In this document: positions 1 through 64,000 of the stretch, piece by piece
Layout of the letters: each line of letters opens with the position of its first letter
Numbering within the stretch: the stretch's first letter is position 1
Source of the DNA: Lepidodermella squamata
Lineage: Eukaryota > Animalia > Gastrotricha
NCBI GenBank assembly: GCA_047495785.1
Contig: JBLDXI010000042.1
Location: forward strand, 3,286,001-3,350,000
Length of the DNA stretch: 64,000 nt
Direction of reading: 5' to 3'
Notes under the pieces: generated by a model
What the model was told of the DNA's origin: nothing
The model's database searches: none
What the model saw: the letters and a program-made list of their open reading frames with translations, nothing else
Made by a program: the position numbers and the translations under genes

Positions 1-1
1 T

Positions 2-15473: not shown

Positions 15474-18400
15474 TCACGCGGCGATGACTTGCTCCTTGTT
15501 TTCGTCGTTGAAATTGCTGCTAGCCGCTGCCAGGTCTGCTAGAAGGGAAATATCGTCGTTCGGCGTATCGATCGAAACAGTTGACGACGAGTTGCTTCGA
15601 CTGTCCGACTGGTGGTTGCTTTTCGCAAATCTATGATTGCCAATCGTCAGGCTGCTGAATGACTCGGCAATTGACGACGAGCCGCCGCCGCCTTCAACTT
15701 TTCGGTTTCCGATGTTGACGAAAACCGCTGATCTGTTTTGTTGATCGACGAGTGGCTGCTTGGCGTTGTTTTCGGATGATTCTGAAATTTCGTCGACTTT
15801 TTTAACGACCAGTGACGGGACTTGGACAGATTGGCTACGCATCGGTCCGCTTGGCGGTAGTCCCAAATTGGCGCCGGCGTATGAACCTTGACGGTTGGCG
15901 AAAGAGAAATGGTCCTTCGATTCACCTTAGTAAAAGGAAAAGCGAAATAATTCAAACTCAAGGCACATATAATGTCCCATAAATTTGCCTATAAATCAAT
16001 CGATAGTTCCATAAATCAATTTATCAAATTTTGGCTGAGGCGAAGCAGCCGAACATTTTTAGCGAGAAAATCACAAATTTGAATGCGAACTAGGAAAACG
16101 ACAGTTTCGGAAGTTTTAGGAATTTTTCGCCAAGTTCATTAAAATGCAAAAATGCCGTCCAAATCGTTGACCGAACCAAACCGAACATTTCGTTCGGCCA
16201 GGATTAAAATATATCGACGTTGCAAAAAAACCCTAAAAATGCGTTAGACGAAGTTGGCCGAACATTTTTGAGAAAGATGAAATAGTTCGGCCAAGTTTGA
16301 CCACGCCCGAAAATGTTTGACCACATCTCAATATCGTTAGCAACGTTGAATAACTCGGATTTAGGCATGTTTACATGTGTTTCAAGGTTAGAGGTGACAA
16401 CTAAAAAGTCTCTTGTTTTGCCTCTTCGTTCATGTTAAAAAACTCTACTATTTACTTGTCACCCCTCACCTTGAAACGGATGTAAACAAGCCTAAATCCG
16501 AGTTATTCAACGTCGCTAACGATATGTTCGCCCAAGTTCGACCAGGCCAAACGTGTTCCGACTAGGTTCGGCCAAACAAAATTATCTTCGACTATAGGTT
16601 CGACTAACCCGAGCCGATAGATTCAAACAGGCCAAAACAGCTTCGGCTAGGTTCCAACAAGCTAAAAAAGCTTCGACTAGGTTCGACCAAGCTGAAACAG
16701 GTTCGACTAGGTTTGACTAACCGGTGCCGATACTGGGGCCGCAAATTCGAAAACTCTAAAACTTAGCTTTGAACTTGGAACTTGAAAAACCATATTTTAG
16801 GGAAATCTAGAACTGGAGCCTTAAACTGAGTGCTGGAACCCGAAATTTAGGATGTGTCCCAGACAATCTCATCTTATATCTAATTCTGAATAATAAAATT
16901 GAGATCATTTGAGGGCTTTTCTATCCCCGCAATTTCGCATTTGAGCTGGGAAAGTTAGCACCAACTTTCGCTTTATCGGAACTCCAATTTTTAGCTCAAT
17001 TCTAGCGCTACTAGGAAATGTCTTGTAAATTGAGCCCCGCAGCCCTTGTCATTTCGAAATTATATATCTTACCAAAGGAAAAATGTTGTCTTACCTTTAA
17101 GTTGGCTTCGCTGGGTGAAAACAGGAGCGTTGGGCTGCAATTTGCTGTTCTGTTGCTGCCACGAGCCGTTCGACATTTGCTGGAAAAACGACTGGTAAGT
17201 CGCGCGATTGGCCACCTGTTGCTGGCGGAAATTGTTGAAATTAATCGTGGTGCCCGACGCGAGTTGCATCGAACTCTGGCTCTGCGTTGTAGTCGCACTG
17301 GTCCCAGTTAACCCAGCCGTTGAATTTGAGTTGATCACCTGAAGAGCGGGCCACATTTTGTGAAAAGCCGCCAAATGAGCTCCAGTCACCTGATGGTTAT
17401 TGCCAGCCATCAGCGATGCGAACGGGTTTTGAAGCATTTGAGGCGGAACCGCGGATTGCGGCAAACGATTCTGCGCGACCAGTGGGACCTTTTGCTGGTG
17501 GTTCTTATTCTCACCCAGCGACATGATCAATTGATGAATATTCGACGGGGAAGGCGTGGGAGAGGGCGGCGGAGGTGGAGGCGCTTGATTTTTATTGGAA
17601 AGGTTAGGATGCTGGGCGCCAGGAACCATAAGATGGGCAGGCGGCTGATCCCAACGAGTCGGCTTCCTAGGCCTTGGAGCCGCTTCTGGTAGTTTAACCT
17701 GAACCGGGCCAGCTGGAACCGGCGACTTATTCGACCCAGTTTTCACGGACGAAACGCCATTCGAGTACAAAATGGTTGTAGTCCCGCTCGGGGATCCGCT
17801 AACATGGTGCCTTTTAGTCGATAAAGCCAGCCTGTGACTTTCCTGGATGTTTAGCAGAAGCAATTCGATGAGCGGAGCTTTGTCGTATTCAGCGCTGATG
17901 AGATCACGAATTTGGCGAACGATGTTGGAATATTCATGAGCTGATCGGGCCAAAAGGTCAGACGACAAGCTGTTGAGAAGCAATTCGAGTTGCTGCTTGG
18001 AATCGATTGGTTCCAGCTTCATAGGCTGCCATCCATTCTAAAATTTGCCATAAAAAAGTAAAAATAATTCAATTAATAATAAATAAATTATTTCATTTCT
18101 TCTTAATTAATCAATTTTTTAGATTTTTTTATGAATTGATTTTAACCTTTTTCGCCTGAAGGATTAAGCTGGCCAAAGTTTTCATGCGCTGCGAGAACGA
18201 AGCCGATTGAGCAATATCGGTGAGTTCTTCGCAGAAATTAGCCCACCATTCAATCATAGCCTTGGCGAGAACCTGGACTTCAAACTCGCGTCCGATACGG
18301 TTCAGCAGTTCCGCTAAGCATTCAAGCGCATCTTCGGTTTTCCGCGCTAACAATGAATCTGTCAGCGACAGCAGAAACGTGAAGTTGATATGCTTCATGT

Positions 18401-21133
18401 CGAACAGTTTGGCGACCAGTCTAATTAATCATAATTAAAATTAATTAAGCCCTTCATGCCTGGGATTAGTCCCATCACCTGATGCAAGCGATGTTCTTTC
18501 GCTTGAGCAAATTTTCTAGTTGCCCTATTTCTTGAGGCAGGTAGGCGTTTTTGTTCGCCTAGGAAGACAAGCAATTTAGAAAATTTCCACGAAAATTCAG
18601 GGACAAACCAGATCTTTCGATGACTGCAAAAGCTTGGCAGTTTCGCATTTGGCGCTCAGGTACTTCAAACAAGCTTTCTGAAGCTCAAGAGTGAAATTCT
18701 TACCAACCCCGTAATCTTGGCGGTAAAATGCAATGCAAAGCTTAGCAGCATCTTCAAGCGACTGCTCGTTGCTATCGATTTGCAGAAAAATCTGTAAAAA
18801 ATCAGAAAAATTACAGAAAAATTAGCAAAATAATTTTATACCTTAGCCAAAATAATTTCAACAGCTTCGGTAAAAAATGGTATCGAAATCGCCTGCAATT
18901 TCGGCTTGAAAAGGCGGGCAGTTGATTCAATGTTGGCTGTATTGATTTGTGAGATCAAATCGATGAGAGATCGGAATTCAGCGTCCTCTGTCATATTGAC
19001 CGGCTTTGGAAGGGAAATTTGGGCAATTGAAACAGGCGTAGGAGGTTTCCTAACAGGTTCCTCAATTGGGACAGGCTTAGGCGAAGTTCGAATTGAAATC
19101 GTCTGGCCAGCTAGAGTAATGGTCTCATTAGGCTTCCGATTCCAGCCACCCTTCTGAAATTCAAAAAATCACGAGAAATTTAAAATTTCGAAAATTTCAA
19201 TTTTTCAAACCTTTCTGACTTCGGTTAAAAATTGGAGAATTTCTCGCTCTTTTTCAGCGCTAACAAGGCGTCGATTTGGCGCCGCTTTCGTCAAGCGTTC
19301 AGCGCAGCTTTCCCAGAAAGCAACCTCCAATCCATTCAATTTGGCGATGCCGTAGTCAATCAAGCGATCGACGTTCTTCATCACCTCGTAAGTGAACAAA
19401 TACGACAGATCGCGTTCAGGCTTCGCCAGTTCGTTGACGTAGTGCTTGAAAACGTGCGATTGAAGCAGGCCGAGGCGGCACAGCTCGTTCGATAGGCGGA
19501 AACTCGAGCAGAATTCAACGACGTGATCGACAGTTTCGAGGCGGTGAATTTGCATAGCGCTCTGAACGACGGCCTTACGCAGGGTGACTGGTGGTAGGGT
19601 CTTAGTTAAATGGTCCAAAAGCAGCATGTAGCTGGCAAAGGTTCGCGCATCAGCATTCAGCATCTAAAAAATCAAAAATTTAATCAAAAAATGATTGAAA
19701 ATTTGAGTTTTCAACCTCGTTCAGCATTTCATCGATAGCTCCAACAAAGGCGTCCTTTGAGGAGTTGCAGTAGCCTTCCAACAGCCTTTGGATGCTCGAG
19801 GCGTGTGTTACGAAGCTATCGGGATGGCGGCCCAAATTTCGTAGGGCCAGGCGAATTTCTGAGATTTGCCCAGTGTTTCCGAACATTGGAACGTGCGTGT
19901 AGTTATCCTGCTCGGCACAATCAGGCAGTGGGGTCGTGTGATTCTTGGCTGGCGACGGGCCTTTGGTTGAAATTTTAACGATGGCTGGGTCGTCAATGGG
20001 CGAGATGAGTTCACGCCTCGGGCAATCACGTGTCCTCTAAATGAAACAATATTTAAAATTTAAAAATTCAAATAAATACTTCAGAGTTTTTTAAAAATTT
20101 CCTAAATTTTCCAGAAATTAAAATCTAGCATTCAGAAAAAGCTAGGAATTTTAAGGTTTATAATGGTCTGTTAGCCCAAGCCGAAAAATTATTAGACACC
20201 GCGATCCCGTGATAAGACTCTTCCAAAAATAACCTTCCAATTCCTTGGATTATTTTAGATTTTTTTAGTTATTTTTAGCTCAAGACAATAATAAGCGAAC
20301 ACCTTGTACGTTATTGTACTAGAATTCCTTACCTTTTTAATGAGTTCAACGAGCTTAGTAGCGTTGCTGAGCAGGTTTGCATTGGTGACAATGCCTTTAC
20401 GACACGCCTCGCCGAGCACCGTCTCGCATTCCGCCCAAAATTCAGCATCGAATGAATAATCAATGTGAGGCGAGCTCGAGTTGTTATCCAACAGCCATTC
20501 GACGTTGGCGAGAATTTCGTAGAGAAACGCGATTCCGACCTCGCCTCGACGCAGGTTTGCAAACATTTTCGCGAAAAATTTGTAATAACCCCGTTGGATC
20601 AAATTCAGCCGGTAAAGCTCATTGATCAATCTGGAACATTATTAAAAAATATAAAAAAATATACCTTAATTTTTTTAAAATTTACGGTAATTTTCGGCGA
20701 AATTTCGCAACATCTTCAATTGTTTCAGCCTCAGGGTGTTTCATACAATAACCTGAAATCGCTTGCGAGATTGGAAAAATTTGACCATTTTCCAGACGGA
20801 TTGAAGCCTAATTTTCGAAATTTTAAATTAAAAACAAATTGAAGCCAATTTTTTTACATTTTTGATTTGATCAAAGAGTCGAATGTAGCGAGGCACGATG
20901 TCTGGATTCGTGTTGAAAGCCCGCTGTAAAATTTCCTCGACACTTGCGACGAAGAGGCGCTTTGGCATAGAGCCGAGGAGCTTGTAAATTTCACCGGCCA
21001 TAGCATGGCAGCGATTCGGCGAAACGGCATCGACGTAGCTGTCGACCAGTGAGCACAACTTGTTGTAGTCGCGCCGCTGAATCGGATTCATGGCTTCAAC
21101 AGGCGACGAATAACAGCCAGACATGGTTTGCAT
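15474..21133 (-). CDS. Multi-MIF4G (eIF4G/DAP5/PAIP1-like HEAT) protein, paralog A, multi-exon, with Q/P-rich C-terminal tail
   Basis: Three HEAT blocks (LINELYRLNLI; RLSNELCRLGLL; KRKNIACIRLVAKLFDMKHI...EDALECLAELLNRIG...FSQRMKTLASLILQAKKNGW), the last matching eIF4G MIF4G GNIKFIGELFK..EESLECLCRLLTTIG..SSRIRFMLQDVLDLR..NW; short GT-AG introns link the ORF fragments. Confidence 0.8.
16180..16730. repeat. Degenerate minisatellite (~30-bp units, gttcgactaggttcgaccaag...) in the last intron of paralog A
   Basis: Recurrent gttcggcc/gttcgact/aggttcgacc motifs, interrupted by the MITE at 16331-16525. Confidence 0.6.
16331..16525. mobile_element. MITE family X copy 2
   Basis: atatcgttagcaacgttgaataactcggatttaggc...gcctaaatccgagttattcaacgtcgctaacgatat near-perfect TIR. 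Confidence 0.85.
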
Positions 21134-22416
21134 TAAAAAATTGTTGTAACTGTAGCCTTTTGTTGTTTTTTTTGGATAAAAGAATCTTGAAAAAAACAAG
21201 GGTTGAAATGAAATAAAATTTGTAATTATTTTTGAATTTTTCGATGAATCGAGATGAAAATCTAGCGAAAAGGAAATAAAAGTGAAACAAGACAGAGAGG
21301 ATTTTCGAATTTAGCGCGTGTGTTCAATGAAAAACGCGCGCTTTTTGGCAACAGCAGCAGCGGCTCGTGTAACAGCTTGGAAAACACGGCTTTCTTCAAT
21401 GAATGGATATTGTGTTGCAGATATGAATAGTATACGGCAGACGGGCCTCAGCTTGCGATTTCTTGCTTCATTCGATGTGATATTTCAAGAGTCAGACATT
21501 AAACCTGCGACAACTAGGTTATTCGATAATTTGAAAAATGACAGGGCAACAGGATCGAATAAAAAGTAACTCCTATGAACTTATGATCCGGAAATGACCT
21601 TTCAATATTTTTAGGGACATGAGTTCATTCCGACACATAAAAGCTAGAAATTTTCGTCATTTTTTTGCTGTCACATCTCGAGCATATAAGTGAGTGATCA
21701 AACGCTAACACAAGTGATATATATGAGCATTGATACCTCAAATTTCGCCTTCATTCTCGGTGCGATAACGTTGAGTACATGATTTTCTGTTGCCTTCAAT
21801 GTGCTTGCTTTTGCTACATCTTTAGAATTAATAACTTTGGCACTGAGTAAACAAAGCGTGCGAAACATAATTTTATAAAACACCCTCCAAATTTGCCCTA
21901 ATTATTAGCGGAAGTCTCAATTACATAAGCGTCCGCTTTTTTTGTCAGTTGTCATCGGGACAATAAACGTGATTAATTGAATCCATAACCTAAATCGCCT
22001 TCACCGTACACACGGACAAACCTATTAAATTCTTTGTTTTCTCACTGCGCACCTGAGCTTGGTTAAAGTTAACCTAATTGAATGTTGGCAATAATTGGTT
22101 TGATTGAAAACGCGAGGAGCTTTTGTGTAGAATTTCGAGGTAGTTTGTTTTCCGGGCTATGCTATGCCATCAGAAATAACTGACAGTTACAGCCATAAAT
22201 AACCTGGTTATGTCTATTTGCCCTAGGCCCTATTAAATAGCTATTATTAAATCAGATCCAACAACTTTGCCCAGATCCTAATAAAGGCAAAATAAAGGGA
22301 GAAGCTAAATAACGACCTTATGTCTTTTAATTGAGGTCTGGGCGAAACCGGCAAAACACGCGCTAACTCTTGCAACCTCCTCGTGTATTACTAAAAATAG
22401 CATATGGACTAGGAGC

Positions 22417-25481: not shown

Positions 25482-25971
25482 TTACACTTGCTCGCATTTA
25501 CGGTTCAGCATTTGACGCGCAACGCGCTGTGCCCACATGTAGAAGGCCCCAGTTCCAGAGCAGATGTTGTGGGAATGCTGGAAAATTGCCATGCAAGACT
25601 CGTAGCGGCACTTTCGCTCGGCTGCATGCATTTTCTGCGACAAGTGGCGCATGTGGTCTGTATCACCATTCAGCAGTGATCTCGCAACCATTCCTGATGA
25701 GAAGGTTACATTAAAAAGTCGGCGAAAGTCATGACAATCAAGATATCTTACTTTGAAGGTGTTTATCTGGCTGCGGCGTAGTCGACTTGGGTTTGCGTTT
25801 TTGCAAGTATTGTTTGATGGTAGACGGGACCAACTGATCGACTGACCCATCTTTCTCGGCCTGATGGACCATAGCTGTTAGCAAGATATCGACGTTGAAA
25901 TTCTGCTCAGCGCCAAGCGCAATTCGGTGAAGAGCGAGTAAAATCGCAACTAAGCATAGCTTGTACGACAT
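25482..25971 (-). CDS. Secreted 4-Cys helical protein family, paralog P2; exons 25971-25752, 25693-25482
   Basis: Signal peptide MSYKLCLVAILLALHRIALG; KRK site; same phase-1 intron; MHAAERKCRYESC...ICSGTGAFYMWAQRVARQMLNRKC. Confidence 0.88.
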
Positions 25972-34300: not shown

Positions 34301-34402
34301 AAATCATCCATAATGACTTCTAACCCTTTTAAATACCTAATATATACTCGTGAAATTTCGGAAATCGGAAATCGGATCAGACGTTTCTGATACAGTGAAA
34401 AC

Positions 34403-34915
34403 ATGAAATTTTGCATAACAGTCACTGCTGTTATATTCTTGTTCGCCTGTCAATCTGCATCTCCGAGCATTATCGGTAGCACTTCGCAACACCCAACAAC
34501 TCCAAGCCCGCTTGAGCAAGAAATTATCACCAGCTTGTTAGATAGGTACAAAACGCTGACAGCTTCTTCAAACAACAATGACTACAAAACTTGGATGCGA
34601 AGTAGGTTTGAGTAACAACTTTGCTTCACATTTTTTAGTAATGATCAACTCTACCACTTAATTGTTACAGAGCAAATAACAGCCAGTTTCATGGCCGGCG
34701 ATGCTGAGATGATGCGGCAGCTGTCGAAGCAGCTCCACGAAGAAGAACAGAACTGCCGCTTTCAGGCGTGTATGTTCGTTTTTCAGACTCACAGCATTTG
34801 CAGCAGCAATGGCAGCTTCTACATATGGGCGCAAAGAATTGCTGGCAAGATATTCCGCAATCGCAAGTGTGGAAGCTGGTTCGAGCAGAAATCAAAGCCA
34901 GATAACGAAGATTAA
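34403..34915 (+). CDS. Secreted 4-Cys helical protein family, paralog P3; exons 34403-34601, 34671-34915
   Basis: Signal peptide MKFCITVTAVIFLFACQSA; same phase-1 intron; LHEEEQNCRFQAC...ICSSNGSFYIWAQRIAGKIFRNRKC. Confidence 0.9.
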
Positions 34916-36923: not shown

Positions 36924-37049
36924 ACCTTTTGCACAGCCCTAACGGTGATAGATAAAGACAAACGGATTTCAAAATCGTGATCAGGGCATTCGAAAACCCT
37001 CAAAAACTGCTGTCAAATATTTTTTCTACCTCGGATAAATAATTCCGCC

Positions 37050-45004: not shown

Positions 45005-48000
45005 TTATCTGTCGTTTTTATTGAACGATGTCAAGGATCTATCAGACGATGAATCCAAGCTTGCTTTTGCCGACTGTAATTTTTCACTACCACTGAAATT
45101 GTTAGCATCCGTGGTAATATTCAACGGAACAGATAGTCGCTGCGGCTTTGCACGGCTTTTTGGGAGGAAGTAATGGGACAAAGGCCTCCCAGCTTGGTCG
45201 GCAAGAGCAGAGCTATCCCCCGCAGATAATGAGGCGGCGGAGGCTAAGTTCGTGCCAATAAATGAGCTAGCTTGCTGAACTTTAGTCAAAAAAGTTCGGA
45301 AAATCTTGTCAGCTTGCTCACTGGGATACTCGTTCTTCAAAAAGCATTGAATGCGATCAACCAGAGCGAAAAAATCGCCGTGGCGTCTCAATAAATCGGG
45401 TGAAATGTCCGAGATCATGAGATGCATATGTTTGTCATAATTTAAACATTTCCGATCAGAGCTGATGGATGAAAATCGATCATCAGTATTCTATAAAATC
45501 ACGTACCTAATAAGAGGGTGGTTATTTCGTTTCATTTAACTTACGGCGATAGCTGAAAGAATTTCAACGATCGCAGCCTTATGCCGCGTGGAGGATGTTG
45601 CATGTTGCTGAATTTCGAGCAACTCTTTGAAAAAATTCGCCCACCATTCGCTTTTGCCTTTTTCATGAATTTCAGCAGCCAAAAATTCTTTCCCAGCTTT
45701 CACCGAGAATAACTCGAGAAGGCACTCTGAGGCTTCTTCACTTCTTCTCAGCAATAGAGCGTCCACATACGCGAGAAGAAATCTGGAGTGTAATTGTCTC
45801 ATCTCATAGAGTCGACCAACTAACCTGCGGCGATAGGAAATTGACCATCAGAATAGAAAGATTGATCTATACCCACAAACCGAGTACATCCTATGCTCTT
45901 CCTGTGGAGCAAGTTTTGCAAACGGCCAATTTCTTGTGATATTGTCATCCGCTCTTGCGCCTAGAGCATAATGCTGAGAAATTAGTGAATAATTATCGCA
46001 AAATTCTTACTGAACTAGCCGACTCGAGCTCCCGGGTAAGAATGAATTGAATGCGGCTCGAGTTCGCATGATTGAAAACAGAGTCTGTCCTCTCCGAATT
46101 CTCGCCACTTGAAAATCGTTTCAAGCATATGTTGCGAAACTCCAAGCCGAAGTCTTTGCCACGACCATAGTCAATTTTTCCGAGCTCTATGCACAGCTTG
46201 GCCGCATAATCTAAAGTCACTTCATTTTCGATCTGCTCAAATATGGCGTTTTCCAAAATAAGCTCAACAGCATCAGCGAAAAACGGAATAGATAGCTGTT
46301 TCAACTTTGGCTCAAGCATGCGGACTATTGTAGACCGGCTAATAGAAGATGCACGCAACCAAATGACTGAAACCAAGCTGCGGAACTCATCCTCGTGGAA
46401 TGTATTGCTGACGTTGCTTGCAGCAATTGAGATTGCTTGAACATCGATAGAAGCTCAGTCGAAATCGTTCGATACCCTTTTACTTTTGATATATGCAGCT
46501 GGTTGGTTATTTAGCGGGACTTCTGGGGGAAAAGCTATGCTGAAAGTGGTGAAAGGTCGATCGAAAGATGCAGACAAAGCAACGGTTCTATTCCAACCAC
46601 CTTTCTGTATCATAATAAGACAAAAAGTATATTAAACCTATTTGAATTATTGAGCTAAAAGAACCGAGTTGATAATCTGAAGAAACAGCAAGATCTCTTT
46701 GGTGAGATCAGGATCCAGTGGATTTCCCTTCTTCAAACAGAATGCCGATAGCCTGTCATGGCATTCGCGCCATAATGCTCTTTCCTCGGCAGTTTGATGC
46801 ATGTAGCCGTCTTCTATCAGCCGATCGACAACAATCATAATTTGGTACAGAAAGGGTATCGTAAGAGCCGTGTCCTGACGAACAAGTCGCCGGATGTAAA
46901 ATTTGAATAGGCTGGCTTGAACCAGGCCGGCTCTGTAGAGGTCAGTTATCAGTCGTAAGGAGGTTGCGCAGAAGTGATCGACCTGTCGCTTCGTTTTAAA
47001 CTGTTCGATTCTCATGCAGCATATTGTTATGGCTTCGCGAAGGCTGTAAGTAGTGCTCTCAGACTTAGCCTCAATAACAATGGTATTTTTTGCCCGGGCC
47101 TAGAAATTAATAACTCTAAAGGATAAGAGAGACAATAAAGCCTACATACCATTTGAAGAATTTCAAACATGCGCACCAGTGGAGAATAGACATCTGGGCC
47201 AATGGCATGAGCCTGGAAATAATTTAACAGTAGAAATATCAATAGCAGAAATTTTGACTCTACTTGATTTAGCATTTCGCCGATACTATCGATGAAAGCC
47301 CGGCGGGAATTCACCTCCTCCAGCAACCGATATGCATCTGCAGCTCTTAAGGAATACTCTTCAGGTTGAGCGGCCAAATTGTCCACAATCTTGTGAAATT
47401 GAGCTTTCCCTCTAGATTGCCAGAAAGGACTTTCGACGTCCTTGGCCCCCAACCTTGGGACCTCCATGATTATCTTTGCATCTGATGGTTTCCTTGCAGT
47501 AATTGGATGCTGCGGCTCCAAGGCTTCTCGATATGCCGAGGTCTCTTGCGCCTCGTAGACATCCAAGGATCGAGGGATATTCGATTTCCCAGTTCTCTTG
47601 TCTGGAACCATAGTTTTACCAATTTCTTTCTCCTTAGCTGACGAAAACTCCTCCTTGTGGAAACTATTCCGCATCCATCCACCTTTCTTCTCAAAAGACT
47701 TCAAAAATGTAGAAATTTTCAACGTTTTCGCCGGGTCGCTGAGGAAGTTTCTTTTCCTGGCTTTTTCCAGAACTGCGATGCATTTTAACCAAAACGCTTC
47801 GTCGCTTTCGTCGAATCGCTCGATGTAACCAGAGTCAAGCAAAGCGTCAACATTTTGAACGATTTCGAAGAGGAACAAAAGGCTGCTTTCGCTATTTTGC
47901 TGATCGACATATATTTTGACGAGGTTGGCAAAGAACTTTTCCCCAAGATAATTCCCGACAAAAAGCTCGTTAAGAAATCTGTGGTAATATAAAAGTTCGG

Positions 48001-48389
48001 CGGGGAAAATCGAGCCATAAAGAGCATTCCTTTGAAACTAACGTTAAGCCATGAAGTATCAAAGATCTGTCCGATTTGGATTTGGGTTGTTTTAAGCACA
48101 TCGTGATTACCGACTCCGCAAAGTTGAATGAGCTGCCTCTGAATTTAGCGGTAACTGATCTAAGTTTATCAAACAGTTTGACATAAGCAGATATTGCTCG
48201 CCTCGATTCCGCCGCCATAGCTGCCGTAAGGATTTTATTGACAGATCTGAGAAAGGTATTTTTCGATTTATTTTTAAGCAGTATGAGCTCCAACTTCCCA
48301 GCTACTTCTGCAAAATCATCAGGATCATCGTTCGACAGTGACTCTAACAACTGATCAAGATTTTCCTCTCCGTGAGTGGATTTGGACAT
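45005..48389 (-). CDS. Multi-MIF4G protein paralog B (in-frame TGA at 46457-46455; possible pseudogene or truncated allele)
   Basis: Same architecture as A: HFCATSLRLITDLYRAGLV; KGGWNR linker; IDYGRGKDF; HRKSIGCTRLVGRLYEMRQL..EEASECLLELF..EWWANFFKEL. Confidence 0.75.
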
Positions 48390-48937
48390 GATCAAGTGCG
48401 TAAATTCTCAAACAATTCCTCGCTTACAATCGTACGAGAACTTGTTGATGTCGGTTTTGCGTGACACCGTTTTTCGTTTCATTGGGACCCCCCTTCTTTT
48501 CCCCCAGCACGTTCAGTTCACAATACGCGCTTCGATTTAAAAGCGATTTATTTCTGGCCATGCGTGCCTTTCAGTCTGCGGAAGAAAATGCACACGTCAC
48601 ACCTTCTGTCATCGGCCTGGATGAATTTGCGATCATAGGAGATGGACAGATGGTAATTGATAGATAATTACCCGATATTTCATTTCCTCTTAAAATTTCA
48701 ACAATAGACGCACTTCACAATCTGGTTTCTGACATGGCAGTTTACTTGACATCAACCCGCGACAAATATCCAGGACGTAAATAGCTCTTGAATGCGTAAA
48801 ACGTCATGTTTGACAAGTGACGACATATTAGTGCTGAGCGGTTAATGTGCTTATAAACCCATTTGGGTGGGTAATATTGTCGCCTATTTTCGTCGAAGAA
48901 TCACCCTTTCGTGTCCCCAAAATAAATATTTTGTTTC

Positions 48938-49567
48938 ATGCTAAGAAAAAGTAACAAATCACCCACGAAGTTACGTCCTTGGACAATGGAATATTTGATC
49001 ACAATGTGGTTCATGCTATCTCTACCAGTCTTCGCGATGGCGGAGCCAGTCAATGCGACAGATGCATTTCAAAGCATTACCACCAATCTCGTCGCTGAAA
49101 CTCCCACCATTCCAGGAAGTCTTGTTGACTCTATTACAGTACCACTAGCTCTACGTCACATGACTTTGGGTCAATACCAGGATCTTTTACTCAAGATTCA
49201 GGCAAATGTCACAGCGATTCTTACGACGTCTTATCGGCCAACTCCAGATAACAAAAATGATCAAGATGCGATTGCTCTTGCAAGTAAGTTTCTCGAGATT
49301 ACCTGTTCCCTGAATTTTATTGTCACATATTAAGAATCGATGGCAGAGTTGTTCAAGCGTGGCGATATCGATCGAATGCGCGAGTGGTCAAAAAAGATGC
49401 ATGAAGAAGAGAGGGTCTGTCGCTACAAGGCCTGCTTGACGGTTTTCAAATCCCACGGCATTTGCCGAGGATCCGGTGGCTTTTTCATCTGGGCGCAGAA
49501 GACAGCATCGAAAATTTTCAAAAATCGCAAGTGCAACTCTTTCTTCAGTATCGACCAAGTCAAATGA
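48938..49567 (+). CDS. Secreted 4-Cys helical protein family, paralog P5 (likely start 48986); exons -49283, 49335-49567
   Basis: MEYLITMWFMLSLPVFAMA signal-like; same phase-1 intron; MHEEERVCRYKAC...ICRGSGGFFIWAQKTASKIFKNRKC. Confidence 0.85.
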
Positions 49568-52888: not shown

Positions 52889-55800
52889 TTATCGCTGCTT
52901 TTTGCATACAAATTCAGCGTTTTCCCCCTCATCAGCAGATCTTTTCCGCAGGCCCGGGCGATTCGGGCTCGGTGTTGGATTAACGGGTGAATGTGGCTCT
53001 GAAGTTAGGTCGTAAACCGGCGCCTGGCCTTCAGAAGCTTTCACTATCACATCGTCCAGCTTCCGCAGAATTATGTCGATGAATTGTTGTGTATGCTTAT
53101 CCGGGAATTGTTCAGCGGCTAGAGATGCTATTTCTTCCATCGTTTGATTATACTCATCCACGGCACCTGGCGGGTCGATCCGAACTAACAGCTGAGGATT
53201 CACAACAGCTAACAGTTCCTCCAATTTATCCAAGGCCAAATGTTTTGTATCGACCTCGGGAAATGTTGCCTGAATTATCCAGAAAATTAGTGAAAATATC
53301 AATCATTGATAAAATTCAACCTTGAGCAGAATAATAGCTCTGACGTGGCACTTCAGCTTTTCGGAAGACTCAGCTTCCAAGCCGATACTCATCAGTTCCT
53401 TGAAAAATGCCGACCACCATTCTTCGAGATCATTATCGCGGACTTCCGCCGCGAATACGCTGCCGATATCAGTGAGAAAAAACCGCAAACATTCGAACGC
53501 GTTTTTGTCGCGCGAAGCGAGTAGAGCGTCGCAGAAATGGATCACATATCGGAGTTTCAAATATTTCAACCGGTACAATCGGCCGACCACCCGACTACAA
53601 CCGATTCGCCGCTTCGCACGTCGCATTTCGATCTCAGCTAACTGCGTATTCAACGATTCCGGCTCGTTTGTCTGAAAAGAGCGAAAATTCCGAATTATTC
53701 AGATTAATTGCGTATTGCGTATACCGGCAACGCAGGGTAATAGTGATTAGGGGAAAGGGAAACCTTGGACCGGTTTGGCTTTGAAAGCGATTAACCTTTC
53801 AAGTTTGAAAGCTAGAAACTTCAAAACAATAGTTGATTTCAGAAAATCACGAGCACCCAAAATAACTCGCAAATTTTTAAAAGTTGGGCAAACGTTTTCA
53901 ATTTCCAAAATCATTTAAAAATTCAAAAATTATTAAAATTTGCAGGAATATCGAGGTGACCTTGCCCACATTTGTTTTAAGAATTACGCTTGGACTACAA
54001 TTCTTTTTCAAACCGGGAGTTATACTTTATTTTGATGGTTTTTGCTAGAATGTATTTAGAAACGAACGAAGTCACTAAAGGTTTACTTGAAGCAGCAGTT
54101 AAGGCTCTAATCCCGGCAGAGGCGATTGATAGATTCGCGGTTGCTATCAAAAGTGCCGTGGCACAACAATCAACTCAACAACAGCAGCTAGCGTCGCAAG
54201 CCTGGTCTGTCGGTTTATCGCAGTTTCACTCATAGCCCGTTCAGCCTATCGCGTCATCGCCGCTCTTACTACCTACCGAGCACTTCAAAATTTTCACCAT
54301 CAAACCACTGGCCGTCGCCTCAATCTATCACTTCTCATGGGCCTGCCTCCTTGAAGTTACGACCGTCAATTTTGGAGCTATCTCTGCGGTATTCGCCATT
54401 CGACCCTGTTTGGGCGCAGTTCCAGGTTGAGTATCAACAGAGTTCGGCTGATGTGCCGAAGCTAAGTAAGGAGCTTATCTGCCAATTTTGCTCAAAAGCG
54501 AAGCCCAGGCAAAATTTCCGGCGATATTGCCTTGCATGCGACAACAATGGTAGAGCTAGCGAAGGAAATACTGAAGCTATGAAATACTGATACTGATAGC
54601 TGAAATACTGATGCTAGCGATTTCCGCCGCTGAAACACCCGAAGATTACAACACAGAAGGGATCCTGGGGCAGTGCAGGTTGGGGTACCATGTTGGGGGA
54701 ACTTTCTGGGTCGCATTGAGGAAAAGATACGATTTGAACTATTTGCCTATCGCGCTGAGGATTGTCCTAAGAACTACAAATACAACACTCTTTCCCACTG
54801 GGAGTCTGTCAGCTCCAAATATCCCATCTTGGCGAAAATAGCTCGGCAGACTTTTATGATATCAGCTGCGTCTTCCGAGTCAAAAAGGCGGTTTAGTCAA
54901 GCCAAAGCACGCATCAACGGTGGCACCTCAAGCCTCAAAACATCGAGGACCAGGTCACCTAGCAATCCGCCTGCATCCGTGGTATGTGGCCAAACATGGC
55001 TTGATCTGCTTCTCGTGAAAACTGATAAGTATCGATTCAACATGAACATAACTTATTATTCACGATTATTAATGCTGCCTGCGAACTTACACGGTGGAAA
55101 ATAGCCAGAATAAATAAAATAACCCGCCACCCACGCGGGTCTCACCGCAACCCAACCCGCACCAAACTGCACCAAACCGCGGACCCAAAAAGTTCCCTCA
55201 ACATAGTACCCCAACCCGCACTGCCCCAGGATCCCTTCTGGTACAACACCAGGCTGATCAGAGATAAAGTGACTACAACCCTCTCAGAAAAAGTCGCTGA
55301 AACCGTAAGCAAATCATGCGGAACGTCGTCAAAATTCGCCTCAGCCGAATCACCCGCATCGGTCGAATCATCCGCCCCGGCTCAGCCATTGAACATCCCG
55401 GTGGTTATTCTGCCAACCACAACAGCTATGCCAGTATGACTGGTTTTTACTTACTTCCGACTACTAGTATTCGATCTGTTTTAGCACAGGCTACATAGAT
55501 TTTAAATGGATTCCAACCTTTCTGCATGTGATTCGTTTTGCGCTTCACACTAAAACTAGGGTTATGAAGACATATATCAGGTAAATTCATTAGGTGTGGC
55601 CAATTGAAATTCTACTACATCGGGATCAAGAGGAAAAAAGGTTCAGTTGATAGCTATTAGCGTCGAATTTCCAGGTTCCCAATTAGTTTACAATTTAAAA
55701 GATGCAAATGGATTATATGGGAAATCCTACCAACTTTTGGAATCTTTTTATAGCTTGGGAGAGTAAAACGTTTAGCCTTCGAAGTTCGATATCAAGAAGA

Positions 55801-58800
55801 AAAAGGTTCAGGAAGCAGTTATTTGCTTCAAATTGTTTCAGTTTTAGAATTTTCGAATGCATTTCCGTTTATTTGGTCCACCACCCATTATTTAATAGAA
55901 AAATTTCTATCAAAAGACCTTCAAAAGATCGAATACCTAATGTTAAATTTGAGAGTATTCTCGTAAGCAAGGCTTCGTCACAATAGAATGAAGAAAGTGT
56001 AACCTCCACCTTAACATAACTTAGAAGCAATGATTCGGTGCGTTAATTATACCTTTTCTCGAATGCTTTGCGCAACTTTTTCAAGTTCGGTATCGCTTTT
56101 ACCGCAAATATATCGGATGAACATTTGCTCGAGCTCTGTGAAGATGTCCTTCCCTCGGCCATAGTCCGCTTTCAACAAATCACGAAACAAGTATACAGCT
56201 AACCGCAGCGATTCCTTATCGGTCACGAACTCGCAAATCTGAAATTACATTCCTAAGCATCAAAATCATGTTCAAACAATGGGAACGGAAGAACATACCT
56301 TCAGCGATATGATTTCTACGGCACTCGCAAAAATATGACTGAGTCGAATGCTTGACAGCTTCTCTTTTATCGAATCGAAGTCGAAATTGACAAGAGTAAG
56401 CGATTCGACCAGAGCTTGAATTTCTTCCATAATCAACTCGTCGCTTCGCTGAGGCTGTTTTCTAGTCTGCTGCCGAGAAATTACGCTATTCTCTCGAGAA
56501 ACCGCTAGAGGAGCTTGTCTAGGATCGCAAATGTCACTTATCTGCGAAATGCTTGTTGAAGAATCTGATTCTTTCAGTGATGATGACGTCGAGCTATTAG
56601 TTTGTTGATGATTCATCGGTTGATTCGTTTCAGCCAAATCTTCATGCCCTGGACCATTAGTTGTTTCCAGCTCTCCGACTGAAATTGATGAAGGCCCATT
56701 TTGAGGTACAGCGGTCGATTCTCTATGACAAACACCGTTAATTTGAGGTGTTACACATCCTTTATTTCGTGGCGCCTGAGTTTCTTCATCAGGACGCGGA
56801 GTATTCTTATCGATTTCCTTATTTTGATCAATTTCCATTTCGACTGCAACTTCTTTTTGAGTAATGTCACAATCTTTTCGAATTTCTGTAATTTGACTGA
56901 GATTGGGTTGAGATTCCTCGACTTGAGCATCTTTTTGTTGATCAGAGGTAGGCAAAACTGAGGAATTCGAGTCTACAAACGAATTTTCAGCAATGACTAG
57001 GTGTCCAGATTTATCGCTGTCATTGTTCGATTTTTCCGCTGATTCTACTTGATGAGCCGACTCGGATATACTCGAATTCGGTTTCGAAGGGGTGGAGGCT
57101 GCAATTGGGTTCGAATTTTCGTTTTCCATGCTCTGTTCAGCAGCACTTGAGGTAGTTTTCGAGGTAGTTTGAGGCTGTTCACTTTCAATATTTGAAACAA
57201 TAGGATTACTAATAGAAACTTGGGTGGAGATTTCTGGTTGTGATACAGGCTCCTGGGTGACCTTTCTCAACCGTGAGGTCCTAACGGGTCTGCTGGGCGA
57301 TGAACTAGCCACCGATATCGGAGATGGTGCAGAAATCGAGGCAGTCTCGACCGCCGCTTTGGGTTGGGGAGAAACAGGTTTTTCCATGGGTTCATTTTTG
57401 ACAGACAACAGCTTCAACCGATTCGGGTTATTGCGATCCCAGCCGCCATTCTAAAACACAAAATACCGAATCAAAGAATTCCCCTAATATAAAAAAGACT
57501 CGGAATTACCTTGGCTAACTGCCCTAGGAAATCAACGGCTTTATCGCGAAATTCGGCTGGCAAAATGTCGTGTTTATTGTGGATGCCGTGCCACAGCCTG
57601 CTGACCACCGATGTCCAAAATCTGACTTCAGCCTCGGTCAACGTGACATTTTGAGCATTGATCACTTCGTCCATATTTCGCAGCAACGCGAGCAGCATTT
57701 CGTAGGAAACCAGAGATTCGCCCTTCGTCAACCGCAATACGTAACATTGAAATATATCCCGTCGAACGACTTTGATTCGATACAGCTCGTTTGTCAATCT
57801 AAAAAATAAATCAATTTTGTTGTCGTTGCTCAGACAAAATCCCTTATTACTCATGAGTCATCATGAATCGCTCATGAATCACGAATTAAATACGACATAG
57901 ATATAAACTGGCATAGGTCCGAAGTAAAAGGTCTGCTAACCTTTTCTGTACTCGAATCTTGGTTTCACTTGTCGATCACTATTGTCACTTGGCGTGGCAC
58001 AGTCAAGGCCCGAGGCGTAGTCAAGTCGACAGATACTGATATCGACATATGACATCCTTATCCTATCAGTATCCTATCGACAATTTCAAATCGTAATTCT
58101 CGTGTTCGTCTTCGATCTCGTCTTCTTCAATCATGGATCGTGTTGAAATGTCAGGTTTTCAAACACAGAATGACAAGGCATATAATAAATAGCTGTTTTA
58201 ACCATAAAGAGAGCAAAAGCTCCAGGAAATCTGGAGCTTATCGGAGTACTGTGCGCGCGCCTGCGGTGATGCGATGGACATGGCAGAACGTATCAAAGAC
58301 ATGGCCGATGAATTGATTTCGATGGTTCGGCTTCCTCCGACTGCGACAGCTCCGTCGATTCCCGATCCCGCCTGGGACTGAGATGAAGTAACAGTTGAAA
58401 ACCTCTGCAAAACTTGGATAATCTTGTCACTAATCACTAATGTGAAATTTTAACATTCCGCACAATCATTGACGTGGCGAACTTCATTTGAAGATTTGAG
58501 AACTGTCAACGCACTTTGGCATCCCACTTTCGCCGCTACGGCGGTTGCGTTGCGATCGATGAACAACGATGAGCATATCATAGAGGCTATCCGCCAAGCC
58601 ACGGCGCAAGCTGACGCGGCGAAAGCAGAGCTAGCCCAGGCGGTGGCCCGCTCTGTCGACATCCGAGCCGGTGTGGAACGCGAAGTCGCCCTGGTAAATG
58701 GCGGCACGATAGCTGCTATTAATGTCGTCAGTGCAGGTAATAGCAATGAATCTTTGCTTCCATTCTAATTTATAATGTTGTGGCCGATCCATATGCGTTG

Positions 58801-61800
58801 TGGTTGCGATTTTCTGCAGATCTCGCACTTGATTTTTCAAGGCGCGACCGTCAATTTGAATTAAGAATCAAATTGAAACAAAAGCGGATTGTCTTGATCA
58901 TCAAGATATATCATTTCGAAGCTGGGATCATATGCTTCATTAATTTAAAATGTAAGTCTATTGCATTTGAATTTCAGTATCTTTGATCCCGGACCGAGTT
59001 GTTACTGGCGTAATCGGCATTATGATGAATCGAAAATCAGGAGAATAGGAGTTCTCAGAAATGAATTCGGAGGTGCCAGAGGTGTCAGAGAACAATAGCA
59101 ACTCGAGCGAAGTGTCCGCTGTCATGCCGAGACCAGCTGGACGCATGCGGGCACTACTTGAGAGGCAAAATGCGGATTCCGAGTTACTAATGTCAGAGTA
59201 ACGGACGCCGTTTCCGAGAATCCCAAATGGTAAAGGAAAGATCGCGATTGGTACAGGCAAAGCAGGGAAAAACGAAACGGTTAAAGCCACCAAAACTGTA
59301 TACTCATCTAAACAACGATTCGGATGTGATTGCTACAAGTTAAGTTTGCCCGCAGTCCCCCACAAACAGCTGGCTGATTCGCGCGATTTCGGCGAGCAGC
59401 GAGGTTTGAATGCAGTACGATCGCACAACTACCCTACAAACTCACGACAAGCTATTACACCCGAAGTTATAAAAGATGTTGTCAGTTTCATAGAAGGCAT
59501 CACGAGAACTTCTCCAAATGGGCGGAATGTGATAATTGTCAACGGCGAGCCAATAGTCAACGCGAACTCACTCAACGAAGCTCTTGCATTTTTGTAAATT
59601 AATGATTCCGTGTTAACTTTTCAAGGTCACGATCTTCACCTGCCTCGGTCACGCTGACAAGAACCAGATTCACGTGTATTTCATGTCCCTTTAGGGAAAC
59701 TAAATTGGGTAATTCTGATAATTACTGCGCTGTTTTAGTTGCCTAATTTCTAAATTACAGGAAGCATTTTCTAAACAATTATTTTGGCCTAAATATGTGC
59801 TCGCCATTAAAAACTAATAAAACCACTTTTGGCATTAAAAATATTAAGGATTGTGATAGCCGGCGCCATTACGGTGTGCGATTGGAGAATTCCTTCTGTA
59901 CGCTACGCGCGAACGACCCTTAGTGAGGACGAAAATAGCTCACGATGAGATGACCGGCGTTCGACTGGGTCTAAAATATCCATTTCAAACATTCGCTCAA
60001 ACAGCTTGACGAGCCAAGTTGGCGATTCGGTCTACTTCAACATTTCATCAATCAAACATGTATCAATCTAACCAATTGTAACCTCAAATAGCTAATAATA
60101 AATCCACCAATTCAGCAAGAGATTAGTAATTCCACCTTATTAATAATTAAAAAAAACGTATAAAATTTCCTTACGGCAGACTAGAACAAAATTCCTTTTG
60201 CTGATCAATATTTTCGATAGATTCGCTCGCCATCGCACACTTGGTAACGAGTTCCGGAAAGCTGACAGGTTCCGTTAGAATATTCGTCGTCCAATTCGGC
60301 TCGGCTTTGAAGTCTTTCAACCCTTCGATAACACTTACGCATTTCGCAAAGGCTTCAGGACTTTCGTTCATCAACGAGTATGTCTTGAAAAAAAAATTAT
60401 TTAGGAAAATCAACAAAATTTGCCGTTTTCTTTACAATTTTCAAGACATCTTTGACATCGGCGATTAATTGGTCGTAAGTTGACCGTGAGCTTAAAAGCC
60501 GTTTTGCAGCCTGAACAGCGACGGAAAGTGTCGCCGAGGATTCGCGCATCCAATAGCTGATGACATCGCCAAGGCATTTGTTCTCCAAATTCATGCTATC
60601 CTTCACCGCCGCTTTCTTCGGCTGCTGTAGATAATTCTGAGCCTGGGCAATAATGAGTTGATGATTGTAATTCCTGACCGTCGGAGGCGCCATCACAGGA
60701 GGCTGGATGATCGGAATTGGCGCAGAGCTGATCGGCACAATAGGCGCCGTAACTTCAACCGGCTGGTTAGGAATCACAAGTTTAATGGGCGGTGGATTGC
60801 TTATTGTTCGTTTTAAAACAGGCGGTGGCGGCGGTATTAATGGCGGAATTTGCTGGGTAGTTTCTGATTCGTTGCTCGAACTTGGGGTGCCTGCAGTTAG
60901 AACAACCATATTAGGGCGGCTCAGCATTGTTCGCGCATCAGGGGCTGCTGGTCGATTGATTAGACCTCTGGCATCGGCTGAGGTAGTTGGGGCTTCGATT
61001 GGAGCACCAGATAGCCATTTCGGCCTCTATAGTTCAATGTAAATCTTATGTGTATTTGAGTAGTGACATTTTTCTTCAGATATAAAAAATATTTCGGATA
61101 TTTTCCGGAAATGGTACAAAAACTATCTAACATGGTCAAAAACCGGAAATGGTCAAAAAAGCCACCTTCAAATTATTTTTAGAAGGATTTCGCCGAGATT
61201 TGTTTGTAAATTTCATCCTTTTGATGATCTAATTAGCTCGATCTCAATTTCTATCAAATAGAATTTTTCCATGAAAAAAGCAAAATCTTACCGCTCGGCT
61301 TATGTCCCATAGGAAAGTCGTAATATCGGCATAGGCGAGACGATCAGCAATCAACCCGGAATCGTAAGCTTTTTTGATGTGATCAACAACATTCACCCAA
61401 TAATTTTCATTGCGAGCCATCTCCAAAATTCCACCGTCGATTAATAAGCATACATCACGGACGATTTCGACTAGGAATCGAATCGCTATTTCATCCCTCT
61501 TTCTCTGAAGATGTCGATTCGCTATCGATTTCAAAACCGCGCAATGAACCATGTTCGTTTTGAAAACTTCATTCATGAACCTGAGCAAAATTTGTGAAAA
61601 ATAATTCGAAACTTAATCTAAAAAGATTTTACGGTAGCCTTCTTCGGAAAGAATAAAGGGCAGTCGCATTCGTTCCCATAGATTTCTCAAAGCAACTGCG
61701 CAGCGAACCCTCAAATCTCGCCGAGAACGAGTCGCGGTTTTTCAGGGGCTATAAACAATAAAAATCTATGTAGGATGAAGTTTAGGCGCCTCAAGACTAA

Positions 61801-62075
61801 TACCATTGATAACTCAGACATCAAACGGCCTGTTAAGGGAATAGCACTCGGGCCGAAACTAACGCACTGAAAATAATTCGGAATCAAATTTACTCAAAAA
61901 AACGAATGTTTCAGTTCCAAACCGTTTCAAAAACATCGGAAACCAGCTGGTTAAAGTTATCTCGATTATTTGTAGACCGAATATAAAACGAAAGTTCCGA
62001 CGAAACGCGGTCGAAGTTCAACGGATTAATTACCAGCTCTTGTACGCAGGCAACTATATGAGGATCTGGTGACAT
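52889..62075 (-). CDS. Multi-MIF4G protein paralog C, with two introns expanded by insertions (~53700-56050 and 57800-60173)
   Basis: MSPDPHIVACVQEL.. (domain 1, RFMNEVFKTNMV); EFCSSL|PLTNELYRIKVV spliced across a 2.4-kb intron (domain 2); NGGW linker; S/T-rich spacer; ADYGRGKDI; KRRIGCSRVVGRLYRL..NAFECLRFFLTDIG..EEWWSAFFKEL (domain 3). Confidence 0.75.
54654..55240 (+). mobile_element. Internally deleted hAT transposon (587 bp) retaining the hATC dimerization-domain remnant
   Basis: ~50-bp TIR cagaagggatcctggggcagtg / cactgccccaggatcccttctg; TSD ttacaaca/gtacaaca (7/8); LSHWESVSSKYPILAKIARQTFMISAASSESKRRFS = hATC motif. Confidence 0.9.
58240..59600 (+). pseudogene. Antisense, stop-interrupted coding-like sequence inside an intron of paralog C (probable transposon-borne relic)
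   Basis: Ala-rich helical ORF 58469-58768 and a long + frame (~58980-59597) with two stops ending ITPEVIKDVVSFIEGITRTSPNGRNVIIVNG. Confidence 0.35.
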
Positions 62076-62253
62076 TTTATTCAATTTTATATATAACCTA
62101 TTATCCAACAAAAGTTCCGTTTTAGAAATTTTCGAAAATATTTTTCTCATTTTGTAATGACGAAAAGCCCAAGAACAAATGTCCCCGGGCAAAATTTCAC
62201 ATCGTGAGTTACGATATTTATATATACAAAACAAAATATTAATCAACACGGAA

Positions 62254-64000
62254 TCATTTGCTCGTCGTTGAAGTAGGACGACAAGATGCAGCAGGCTGGC
62301 CGGGATTTGATCGCTTAGCACTTGAATCATTGTTAGGAATTGAGCTTGAATTAATTTCGCCAGGTCTTTTCACCCCTTTGTTCGATACGGGTCGGTTTGA
62401 GCCATTATTAGCTGAGTTACTGGAAGAAATCGAAGCTGGCCTTGTTAGAGTAGAATTACTCAGCGATGAGCCGATTTTTCGCATGAAAACAGCACTAAAT
62501 TGCTGACAATAATCGTCACTCGACTCTGATCGAACGAATTCGAGGATTCGATCGAATTCTTGCTGGTACAATGCCGAGTTTTTCGCGAGTTCGGGCGTCA
62601 GTTTTGAGAGCATGCCTTCCAATTTACGACTAGCCTCCTTCGCTGGATCAACGTCAGGCCAGTGTTTTTTCAGGTTCAAAATATCTCGCAATATTAGTTT
62701 TGATTTTTCAGATGACGAGCCTATTTTCGCCAAATCAGTGAAAAAGCCGGTCCACCACGATTCCAATTTTTGCGCACGAACCAGAGGTGGCAATAATTTT
62801 CCGATTCCTGAAAATATCTCGAATAGCAGGGCTAAGGAATCCTCGTCACCGATGGACAATAAAGCGTCCATGAATGGCGTTAAAAACTTGAGATCAAGCT
62901 TTTTGTTCAAAAATAAGCCATTTGTTATCCTGTTGACGGAAAAAAATTAAAGATCGCGAGCTACTTTTGAGGCATGGAACTCACTTTACACATCCTATTC
63001 GACGCTTTAAAAACAAATTTTCCAGTCGATGAATTTCCTCGACCTTGTCGGCAATTGTTCTTGTTTCACCGGGAAGATAGCACATGAGAGAATGCAACTG
63101 GTCACAAATAAATTATATCGACAAGATAGCAAAATAATTATTTATAATGTACCGTTTCAGCTTTTTTCGAACCCGTTTCTACGGCTGATTTGGCCAGCTC
63201 AAGGTCTGATTTAGCTTGCCCACTGACGTATTTCAAGCAGAACGCTTCGAAATCCGGCTGAAAATTGCGACTACGACCGAATTCAGTTTTTGCTAGATCA
63301 TTAATCGCTTTGACAGCCTCTTCAGTAGTCTGGTCGTTGATCAATTCAAAAACCTGTGATTAACAAATAAATTACGAAAAATTCTTAGAAAAATCTACAA
63401 AAATCCACCCTAATAGAAAATTGCGAAACTGCTTCATAGAAGGCAAGAGGAGTAGGAAGGGACTTGATATGAGCTTTGTAAGCTTTCAACCACGGCGGTT
63501 CTGAATTCGACGGGTTGTCCATAACAATCGATCGCAAAATCACGCGAAGAGCGTCATCTTTAGGTCCTTGTTCTTCCTGAGGCTGCGGGGCAATAACAGC
63601 CGCAACATGGTTGGGGAAGGTAGCAGATTGAACTTGAGCGATTTGACGTTGTAGCTCGTCAATCTTTTCTTGCATAGAGGCAAAATCGTTGACAGAAACA
63701 ATGGGAATAACAGCAGGGGGCAATGTCGGGTTGTTTTGAACCGCCGGCACCGCCACCCTTGCAGGAGGTTCGGGTGAGGCTGGCGATATATTACCGCCTA
63801 AACTTCGCCGGCTAACATCAGGCGCGCCACGACTCGGCAAGTTTTGTTGACCTGGCGAAATCGAAGATGAAATTTCTGACGGCCGAGTGGCCAAACTAGG
63901 TGCCGCCAGGGCCGGAAAGGAAGGGTAATTGGCCGCAGTTGACGTTATCGCGAGAATTTTCGGGGCAGAACCAGTAGAACTGGGCCGAGGAGCTGCCTCT
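62254..64000 (-). CDS. Multi-MIF4G family paralog D (5' part beyond window)
   Basis: Pro-rich linker then TEFGRSRNF..FLKRRIGCVK|ITNGLF..DEDSLALLFEIFSGIG..LESWWTGFFTDL and C-terminal LEGMLSKLTPE block. Confidence 0.8.

Follow-up and report, generated by a model that had tools for sequence, protein, structure and literature searches.

A tandem array of genes for triple-MIF4G proteins of the eIF4G type in the gastrotrich Lepidodermella squamata

In translation, splicing, export and decay alike, DEAD-box RNA helicases are switched on and off by MIF4G domains, which serve as their universal docking platforms, as illustrated by the pairs formed by eIF4A with eIF4G, eIF4A3 with CWC22, DDX6 with CNOT1 and DDX19 with Gle1. 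To our knowledge, every characterised MIF4G domain is a docking platform for protein or RNA, usually for a DEAD-box ATPase, and the three-MIF4G proteins known so far are limited to UPF2 and CBP80, both encoded by single ancient genes. Here, we analysed a stretch of 64,000 nucleotides of the gastrotrich Lepidodermella squamata (contig JBLDXI010000042.1, positions 3,286,001 to 3,350,000; hereafter the window) that contains four neighbouring genes, A to D, for proteins built from tandem copies of an eIF4G-type MIF4G domain. We consider, with a probability of roughly seven in ten, that they are four members of a lineage-restricted family, one of them truncated at the end of the window, and that this family descends from the eIF4G middle domain (HEAT1/MIF4G); its mechanism would be that of a scaffold. 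Such an architecture hardly occurs in public data: an MIF4G domain of the eIF4G type is present in three copies, the remaining modules of eIF4G are missing, and the gene has expanded in tandem. In the literature, we found three-MIF4G proteins only as UPF2 and found no lineage-specific tandem expansion of MIF4G; one gastrotrich genome paper that we consulted mentions neither MIF4G and eIF4G nor operons and introns.

The four-gene array

The window consists of compact, intron-bearing eukaryotic DNA with a G+C content of 36-46% and no N, in which introns carry gt...ttttcag ends and are usually 48-64 bp long. An all-against-all blastp comparison of its stop-to-stop fragments of at least 35 amino acids (aa) recovered three mutually similar sets of minus-strand blocks that recurred at about 15.5-21.1 kb (A), 45.0-48.4 kb (B), 52.9-62.1 kb (C) and 62.25-64 kb (D). 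The C-halves of the third domain (D3), at 18132, 45539, 53306 and 62257, matched one another with E-values of 1e-8 to 1e-21. The corresponding values were 3e-12 to 1e-18 for the second domain (D2; C-halves at 19208, 46650 and 57474) and 1e-4 to 4e-9 for the first one (D1; C-halves at 20258, 47030 and 61247), and D1 and D2 blocks also matched each other. Hidden Markov models (HMMs) derived from these blocks matched the loci A-D only among all six-frame fragments, with no fifth copy of the family in the window. Three helical domains are present in each of A, B and C, with 22-43% identity per domain between paralogs and 33% overall identity between A and B.

A previous reading of the window from its sequence alone (the sequence-only reading) had proposed four co-oriented paralogs on the minus strand (A 15474-21133, B 45005-48389, C 52889-62075 and D from 62254 to beyond 64000), which blastp and the family HMMs bore out, and three tandem blocks in A, B and C, which proved to be genuine MIF4G domains, three per protein. 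The motifs that it listed are present in A-D or in A-C, with the reservation that only the last domain, the tail block and a linker of D lie inside the window. The pattern [DE][YF]GxG[KR][DN][FI] appears as DYGVGKNF in A, DYGRGKDF in B, DYGRGKDI in C and EFGRSRNF in D; [GA]C.[RK][LVI] as ACIRL, GCTRL and GCSRV in A, B and C, respectively; and WW..F as WWANF in both A and B, WWSAF in C and WWTGF in D. KGGW or NGW follows most domains. All of them have counterparts in eIF4G. The first motif corresponds to the loop and helix start of TVNFRKLLL, the second occupies the position of GNIKF, and WW..F...L is the equivalent of DQYFNQMEKI. What had been described as GGW linkers corresponds to NWVPRR, with which eIF4G and DAP5 domains close, an ending of the W-x-[PR]-R type being kept in most domains.

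Identity of the domains

Alignments were made domain by domain; whole-protein alignment with MAFFT stacks every domain copy on one register. We searched 1.84 billion representative proteins with a profile of the D1/D2 C-halves and obtained seven matches. Four were members of the family (P0001, E 5e-47; P0002, E 2e-17; P0003; P0004), all from two metagenome assemblies, and the rest were ordinary eIF4G proteins, three in number (E 4e-5 to 4e-4), aligned over the GNI[KR]FIGELY helix. These three match Pfam MIF4G with E-values of 1e-67 to 1e-143, and one of them also carries MA3 and an eIF4E-binding domain. In a word-indexed protein search, P0001 as query returned itself only and the D3 alignment returned nothing. 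The extreme restriction of the family in the profile search supports the lineage specificity suggested by the sequence-only reading.

D3 of P0001 matched human eIF4G1 (E 1.2e-4) and eIF4GII (E 2e-4), with MGCIRLVAKLF aligned over LGNIKFIGELF and EEGLECLLELF over EESLECLCRLL. The family profile A4, although built without eIF4G, retrieved from the PDB chains of eIF4GII (4.6e-7), eIF4G1 (7.8e-6) and yeast eIF4G (2.4e-4), and no chain of DAP5, PAIP1, UPF2, CBP80, CWC22 or CNOT1 at E<=10. The N-halves of all domains could also be aligned to that of eIF4G. At the sequence level, the domains therefore prefer eIF4G-type MIF4G over the other MIF4G families.

The predicted structures led in the same direction. 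The models of P0001 display the ten-helix, five-hairpin, HEAT-like right-handed solenoid of solved MIF4G domains, and the structural comparison lists were topped by eIF4G and DAP5. The other eIF4G entries and DAP5 scored 15.7-16.6, followed by CWC22 (15.3), PAIP1 (15.2), MIF4G-2 and MIF4G-3 of UPF2 (14.7 and 14.0), CBP80 (13.8), Gle1 (13.7) and CNOT1 (12.3); the leads from the ESM Atlas were MIF4G-compatible only. D2 is assigned to MIF4G because of its sequence homology to D1, an N-half alignable to that of eIF4G and its predicted helical-repeat architecture. D2 of A is 75% identical to D2 of P0001, which is modelled as a helical-repeat bundle with a predicted local distance difference test score (pLDDT) of about 93.

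A maximum likelihood tree of the alignable C-halves, in which UPF2 sequences were not included, recovered the D3 copies, without exception, as a single clade (95/86), which joined the eIF4G MIF4G domains against D1 and D2 (100/99). The domain is thus an eIF4G-type MIF4G, with D3 as its most eIF4G-like version, and D1 and D2 are shown to be an older and more diverged internal duplicate pair. The previous statement that these proteins resemble neither canonical eIF4G nor UPF2 holds for the architecture, which is unlike both, but not for the domain itself, which resembles eIF4G in sequence profiles, structural lists and the tree position of D3.

The other parts of eIF4G were missing. A and B start 10-20 residues ahead of D1, and the eIF4E-binding motif YxxxxL-phi was not found N-terminal to D1 in either of them, its regular expression matching only inside D3 or the tail block. 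No MA3, W2 or Upf2 Pfam domain was detected in P0001, in the tail exon of A or in the C-terminal blocks. In yeast eIF4G, Thr618 and Glu659 are important for eIF4A binding, Glu659 forms a salt bridge to Arg312 of eIF4A, and reversal of its charge abolishes the eIF4A-eIF4G interaction (PMC4138323). We placed these contact sites through the chain numbering of 2VSO, Thr618 being the T of LNKLT and Glu659 the E of DEP/SEP. In the N-half alignment, the equivalent of Thr618 is never Thr in any domain copy, and that of Glu659 is Asn in five of the six D3 copies and Asp in the sixth, that of C. In D1 and D2, the latter position is occupied by Asn, Ser, Asp, Gly or Leu in six of eight copies, and by Glu only in D1 of B and D1 of P0001. 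This replacement of the contact residues, as judged from the alignment, speaks against a canonical interaction of D3 with eIF4A.

The alternative that survives best is that these proteins are decoys for eIF4A (eIF4F) or alternative initiation scaffolds, which would bind eIF4A in the canonical way, like DAP5 and PAIP1, and tune general or message-specific translation. Their nearest relatives in sequence and structure are indeed found in eIF4G and DAP5, whose MIF4G domains bind eIF4A, and two D1 copies have kept the contact Glu, but the substitutions at both sites in all D3 copies and in most other domains, together with the severe effect of charge reversal at Glu659 in yeast, make this alternative unlikely. 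It is quite improbable that the proteins are highly diverged UPF2 paralogs engaged in RNA surveillance, in which they would bridge UPF1-like and UPF3-like partners. Indeed, the family profile that reached eIF4G at 4.6e-7 found no UPF2 chain of the PDB at E<=10, eIF4G and DAP5 stood above UPF2 by 2-4 Z units in the structural comparisons, and the tails lack the Pfam Upf2 domain. The W-x-P/R-R ending of the eIF4G/DAP5 type is kept, and the domain tree, with its restricted sampling noted above, places D3 next to eIF4G.

Downstream of D3, a C-terminal block of about 70 aa is common to A-D (alignment A6; HMM E-values of 1e-30 to 1e-35). The sequence-only reading had recognised this short helical block and compared it to the start of a fourth MIF4G domain. 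Its conservation in all four genes was confirmed, but a relationship to MIF4G was undetectable: the block had no significant match in the PDB or in Pfam, and its alignment by hhalign with the family MIF4G profile had a probability of 0.3%, so that the fourth-domain candidate was rejected. From its sequence, this block is best described as a family-specific module, predicted to be helical.

Gene models, orthologs and neighbouring elements

Our own ab initio exon-chaining was usable for A and poor for B, C and D; B was then traced by hand, and C and D were assembled as block models. Gene A, for which the ortholog P0001 served as guide, was modelled as an open frame of about 1,095 aa with 9 GT..AG introns of 50-296 bp, and this model is colinear with P0001, with 42-72% identity per exon. 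On the basis of the exon joins and of this colinearity, its coding sequence spans 17069..21133 on the minus strand in 10 exons (20858-21133, 20686-20807, 20333-20630, 19716-20036, 19211-19663, 18842-19153, 18609-18791, 18479-18558, 18147-18420 and 17069-18037). D1 is located at 20333..21133, D2 at 19211..19886 (HMM A1, E 1.8e-40; KKGGW linker from 19153) and D3, the eIF4G-type domain that contains DYGVGKNF, ACIRLVAKLF and EWWANF, at 18147..18997. The C-terminal block, which starts after NGW, lies at 17762..18037 (HMM A6, E 1e-30) and is followed by a low-complexity tail rich in P, Q and S at 17069-17761. The segment 15474..17068 is a candidate for extra 3' exons or for the 3' end of A, in a region where ab initio paths are unreliable. 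An AATAAA signal is present at +41 after the stop at 15474, with no such signal after the stop at 17069, and the true 3' end of the gene may be at 15474 rather than at 17069. This candidate 3' part also contains an inverted repeat resembling a miniature inverted-repeat transposable element (16207-16562), with a related copy about 5 kb away (11617-11733).

Gene B, the ortholog of which is P0002, was modelled as an open frame of 983 aa with 8 GT..AG introns of 48-64 bp. Its coding sequence (45005..48389, minus strand) has nine exons, 48043-48389, 47264-47978, 47150-47212, 46665-47099, 46484-46604, 46011-46435, 45881-45960, 45545-45824 and 45005-45490, which include D1 (about 47675-48389), D2 (about 46665-47405), D3 (about 45545-46400), the C-terminal block (45215-45490) and the tail (45005-45214).

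For gene C (52889..62075, minus strand, ATG at 62075), an approximate block model was obtained from HMM matches and from blastp and tblastn comparisons with A and B. The D1 N-half is too diverged for its exons to be placed. The recognisable blocks are the D1 C-half (61310-61585), a P-rich linker with the D2 N-half (60175-60927), the D2 C-half (57510-57839), NGGW with a long low-complexity linker and the D3 N-half (56299-57450), the middle of D3 (56053-56238), the D3 C-half (53321-53671) and the C-terminal block with the tail (52889-53269). The gene is spread over 9.2 kb, with two inferred introns of about 2.3 kb, and the remnant of a hAT transposase is located in one of these two introns, on the plus strand (54673..55104; Pfam Dimer_Tnp_hAT, E 8.6e-8), flanked by inverted similarity at 54575-55283. 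The 3' part of gene D (62254..64000, minus strand), which runs off the window, was delimited by alignments and by matches to HMMs A2, A4 and A6. It comprises a linker with the D3 N-half (63409-63894), the middle of D3 (63159-63353), and the D3 C-half with the C-terminal block (LEGMLSKLTPE) and an S-rich tail (62254-62937). The stop codon of D is separated from the start codon of C by 178 bp. An acceptor-like ...ag was also observed within about 17-60 nt before each modelled start codon (in 21134-21283, 48390-48539 and 62076-62253). Together with the short D-to-C spacer, it would be compatible with trans-splicing and an operon-like packing of the genes.

The orthologs belong to a second species known solely from contigs of the metagenome assemblies ERZ27332993 and ERZ23486787. 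Within each domain class, the tree paired A with P0001, B with P0002 and C with P0003. This pairing implies that the three-domain gene is older than the duplications that produced A, B and C, and that these duplications are themselves older than the split from the second species. P0001 has the triple arrangement, and D3 also lies downstream in the ortholog of B, so that D1 to D3 are all present there. At least two genes of the family stand in tandem on a 27-kb contig of the second species, and they contain far fewer introns (L002 1705-6189; L001 242-2683). The segment from D1 through the linker to D2 is a single 512-aa open reading frame (ORF) in the ortholog of B versus a segment with three introns in B, and the ortholog of A has an uninterrupted frame at eight of the nine intron positions of A. 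This ortholog also has one in-frame insert of 19 aa, at model residues 150-165 (pLDDT below 50), which resembles a retained mini-intron. In addition, the end of a glutaminase gene is located about 200 bp upstream of the ortholog of B.

The substitution and polymorphism patterns indicated strong constraint. Between A and P0001, which share 58% aa identity, the proportion of synonymous differences (pS) is 0.79, a saturated value, and that of nonsynonymous differences (pN) is 0.30, with dN lower in the domains (0.28-0.45) than in the linkers (0.69). The second haplotype of the sequenced DNA differs at 21 single bases over 3.6 kb across gene B (44900-48500), the sequenced animal or population being appreciably heterozygous, and the heterozygous coding variants in the modelled frame of B are synonymous in nine cases and nonsynonymous in two, which supports this frame. 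A-C are old duplicates and are intact genes under purifying selection, and the qualification of the paralogs as rapidly diverged was not substantiated. Decaying duplicated DNA, with pseudogenes or mis-joined exons whose proteins would be joining artefacts, is very improbable indeed, since the poor ab initio models of C and D, the lack of transcript support and the transposon debris in C have to be set against the long open frames of A and B through 8-9 canonical introns, the orthologous ORFs open in the second species and the constraint just described.

Other repeated elements were observed among and around the MIF4G genes. The hallmark of a second small family is a conserved exon that encodes about 65 aa, among them four invariant Cys (MR.LS..MH..E..CR...C...F....IC...G.F..WAQ..A.....NR.C), which is present in five copies on both strands with 42-75% identity, at 10646-10876, 34616-34912, 42635-42904 and 49334-49564 on the plus strand and at 25485-25877 on the minus strand, and which had no match in Pfam. 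The exons adjoining it are also paralogous, as seen by comparing 34391-34612 with 42364-42648. In the region 38769-39584, overlapping ORF fragments of the plus and minus strands are 84-97% identical over short stretches, which points to a palindrome, an almost perfect inverted repeat several hundred bases long. Several plus-strand ORF fragments in 1-5800 are also mutually similar, with 27-49% identity.

Proposed function and comparison with known systems

The layout of these proteins is D1, D2 and D3 on linkers predicted to be disordered, then the family-specific block of about 70 aa and finally the low-complexity tail. We propose that, as other MIF4G proteins, they would be docking scaffolds for RNA and helicases, and that they would be uncoupled from cap and poly(A), because the eIF4E-binding motif, the PABP-binding region, MA3 and W2 are lacking. 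It is improbable that they bind eIF4A in the canonical manner; a different DEAD-box protein, RNA or a partner specific to the tail block would be more likely. The replacement of the canonical hot-spot residues for eIF4A led us to rate a non-canonical partner above an eIF4A decoy. With three docking domains per chain, several partners may be assembled or sequestered on one messenger ribonucleoprotein particle. The functions in the germline, in stress or against viruses that the sequence-only reading had put forward are speculative.

Several points weigh against this proposal of a lineage-restricted family of eIF4G-derived scaffolds. The Pfam threshold for MIF4G (PF02854) was not reached, the best score being 18.3 versus 30.8 bits (E 0.002), for D3 of P0001 only, and ten single exons of the window searched against Pfam gave no match. 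The structural models are those of the ortholog P0001, 58% identical overall, and not of the window proteins; in the two-domain model, every MIF4G chain was aligned to D1 and D2 was never matched by itself. The loss of eIF4A-contact residues was read from a sequence alignment and not from a structural superposition. Only one public run covers this DNA, and it is a genomic one, showing two haplotypes and no joints; the gene models are predictions from the DNA, and those of C and D are incomplete. Finally, the functional part of the proposal is one that we infer.

A more ambitious version would be an undescribed post-transcriptional system of diversified, cap-independent triple scaffolds derived from eIF4G, with paralog-specific partners or mRNAs, non-canonical DEAD-box partners and a private interaction of the tail block, which might act on subsets of trans-spliced messages, by sorting or repressing them, or serve as decoys in a conflict with RNA parasites; we hold it to be rather doubtful. 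The array itself corresponds to an independent triplication of the eIF4G domain, without link to cap or poly(A), multiplied into a set of genes that selection has maintained in two or more species, within an animal lineage that has received little study. Should the partners be found, it would offer a natural experiment in the evolution of helicase-scaffold specificity, and a lineage-specific layer of mRNA control may come to light.

Among the known systems, PAIP1, CWC22/NOM1, SLIP1/MIF4GD, the MIF4G domain of CNOT1 and Gle1 have one MIF4G domain each, in other contexts, and none was reached by the sequence profile of the family. CBP80/NCBP1 has three MIF4G-like helical domains, but the family shows no sequence similarity to it and does not qualify as a CBP80/NCBP1 type; the domains of CBP80 are packed as a rigid body around CBP20, whereas those of the family are carried by long linkers predicted to be disordered. 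eIF4G and DAP5 (HEAT1, MIF4G, PF02854) contain one MIF4G domain per protein, in contrast to the three of the family, which has neither eIF4E-binding motif nor PABP region, MA3 or W2, and in which the Glu and Thr that contact eIF4A are mostly replaced. The family has in turn its own C-terminal helical block, low-complexity tail and tandem expansion, with an MIF4G score below the Pfam threshold. UPF2 resembles the family as a scaffold-type protein with three tandem MIF4G domains, found here in A, B, C, P0001 and the gene of P0002, followed by a short conserved C-terminal module. In UPF2, the scaffold of nonsense-mediated decay, this C-terminal part binds UPF1, and MIF4G-3 binds the RRM of UPF3. 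UPF2 differs in that the family has no detectable similarity to the UPF2 domains, no Upf2 Pfam domain and structural scores that place UPF2 below eIF4G. UPF2 is a single conserved eukaryotic gene, whereas the family described here forms an expanded, lineage-restricted array.

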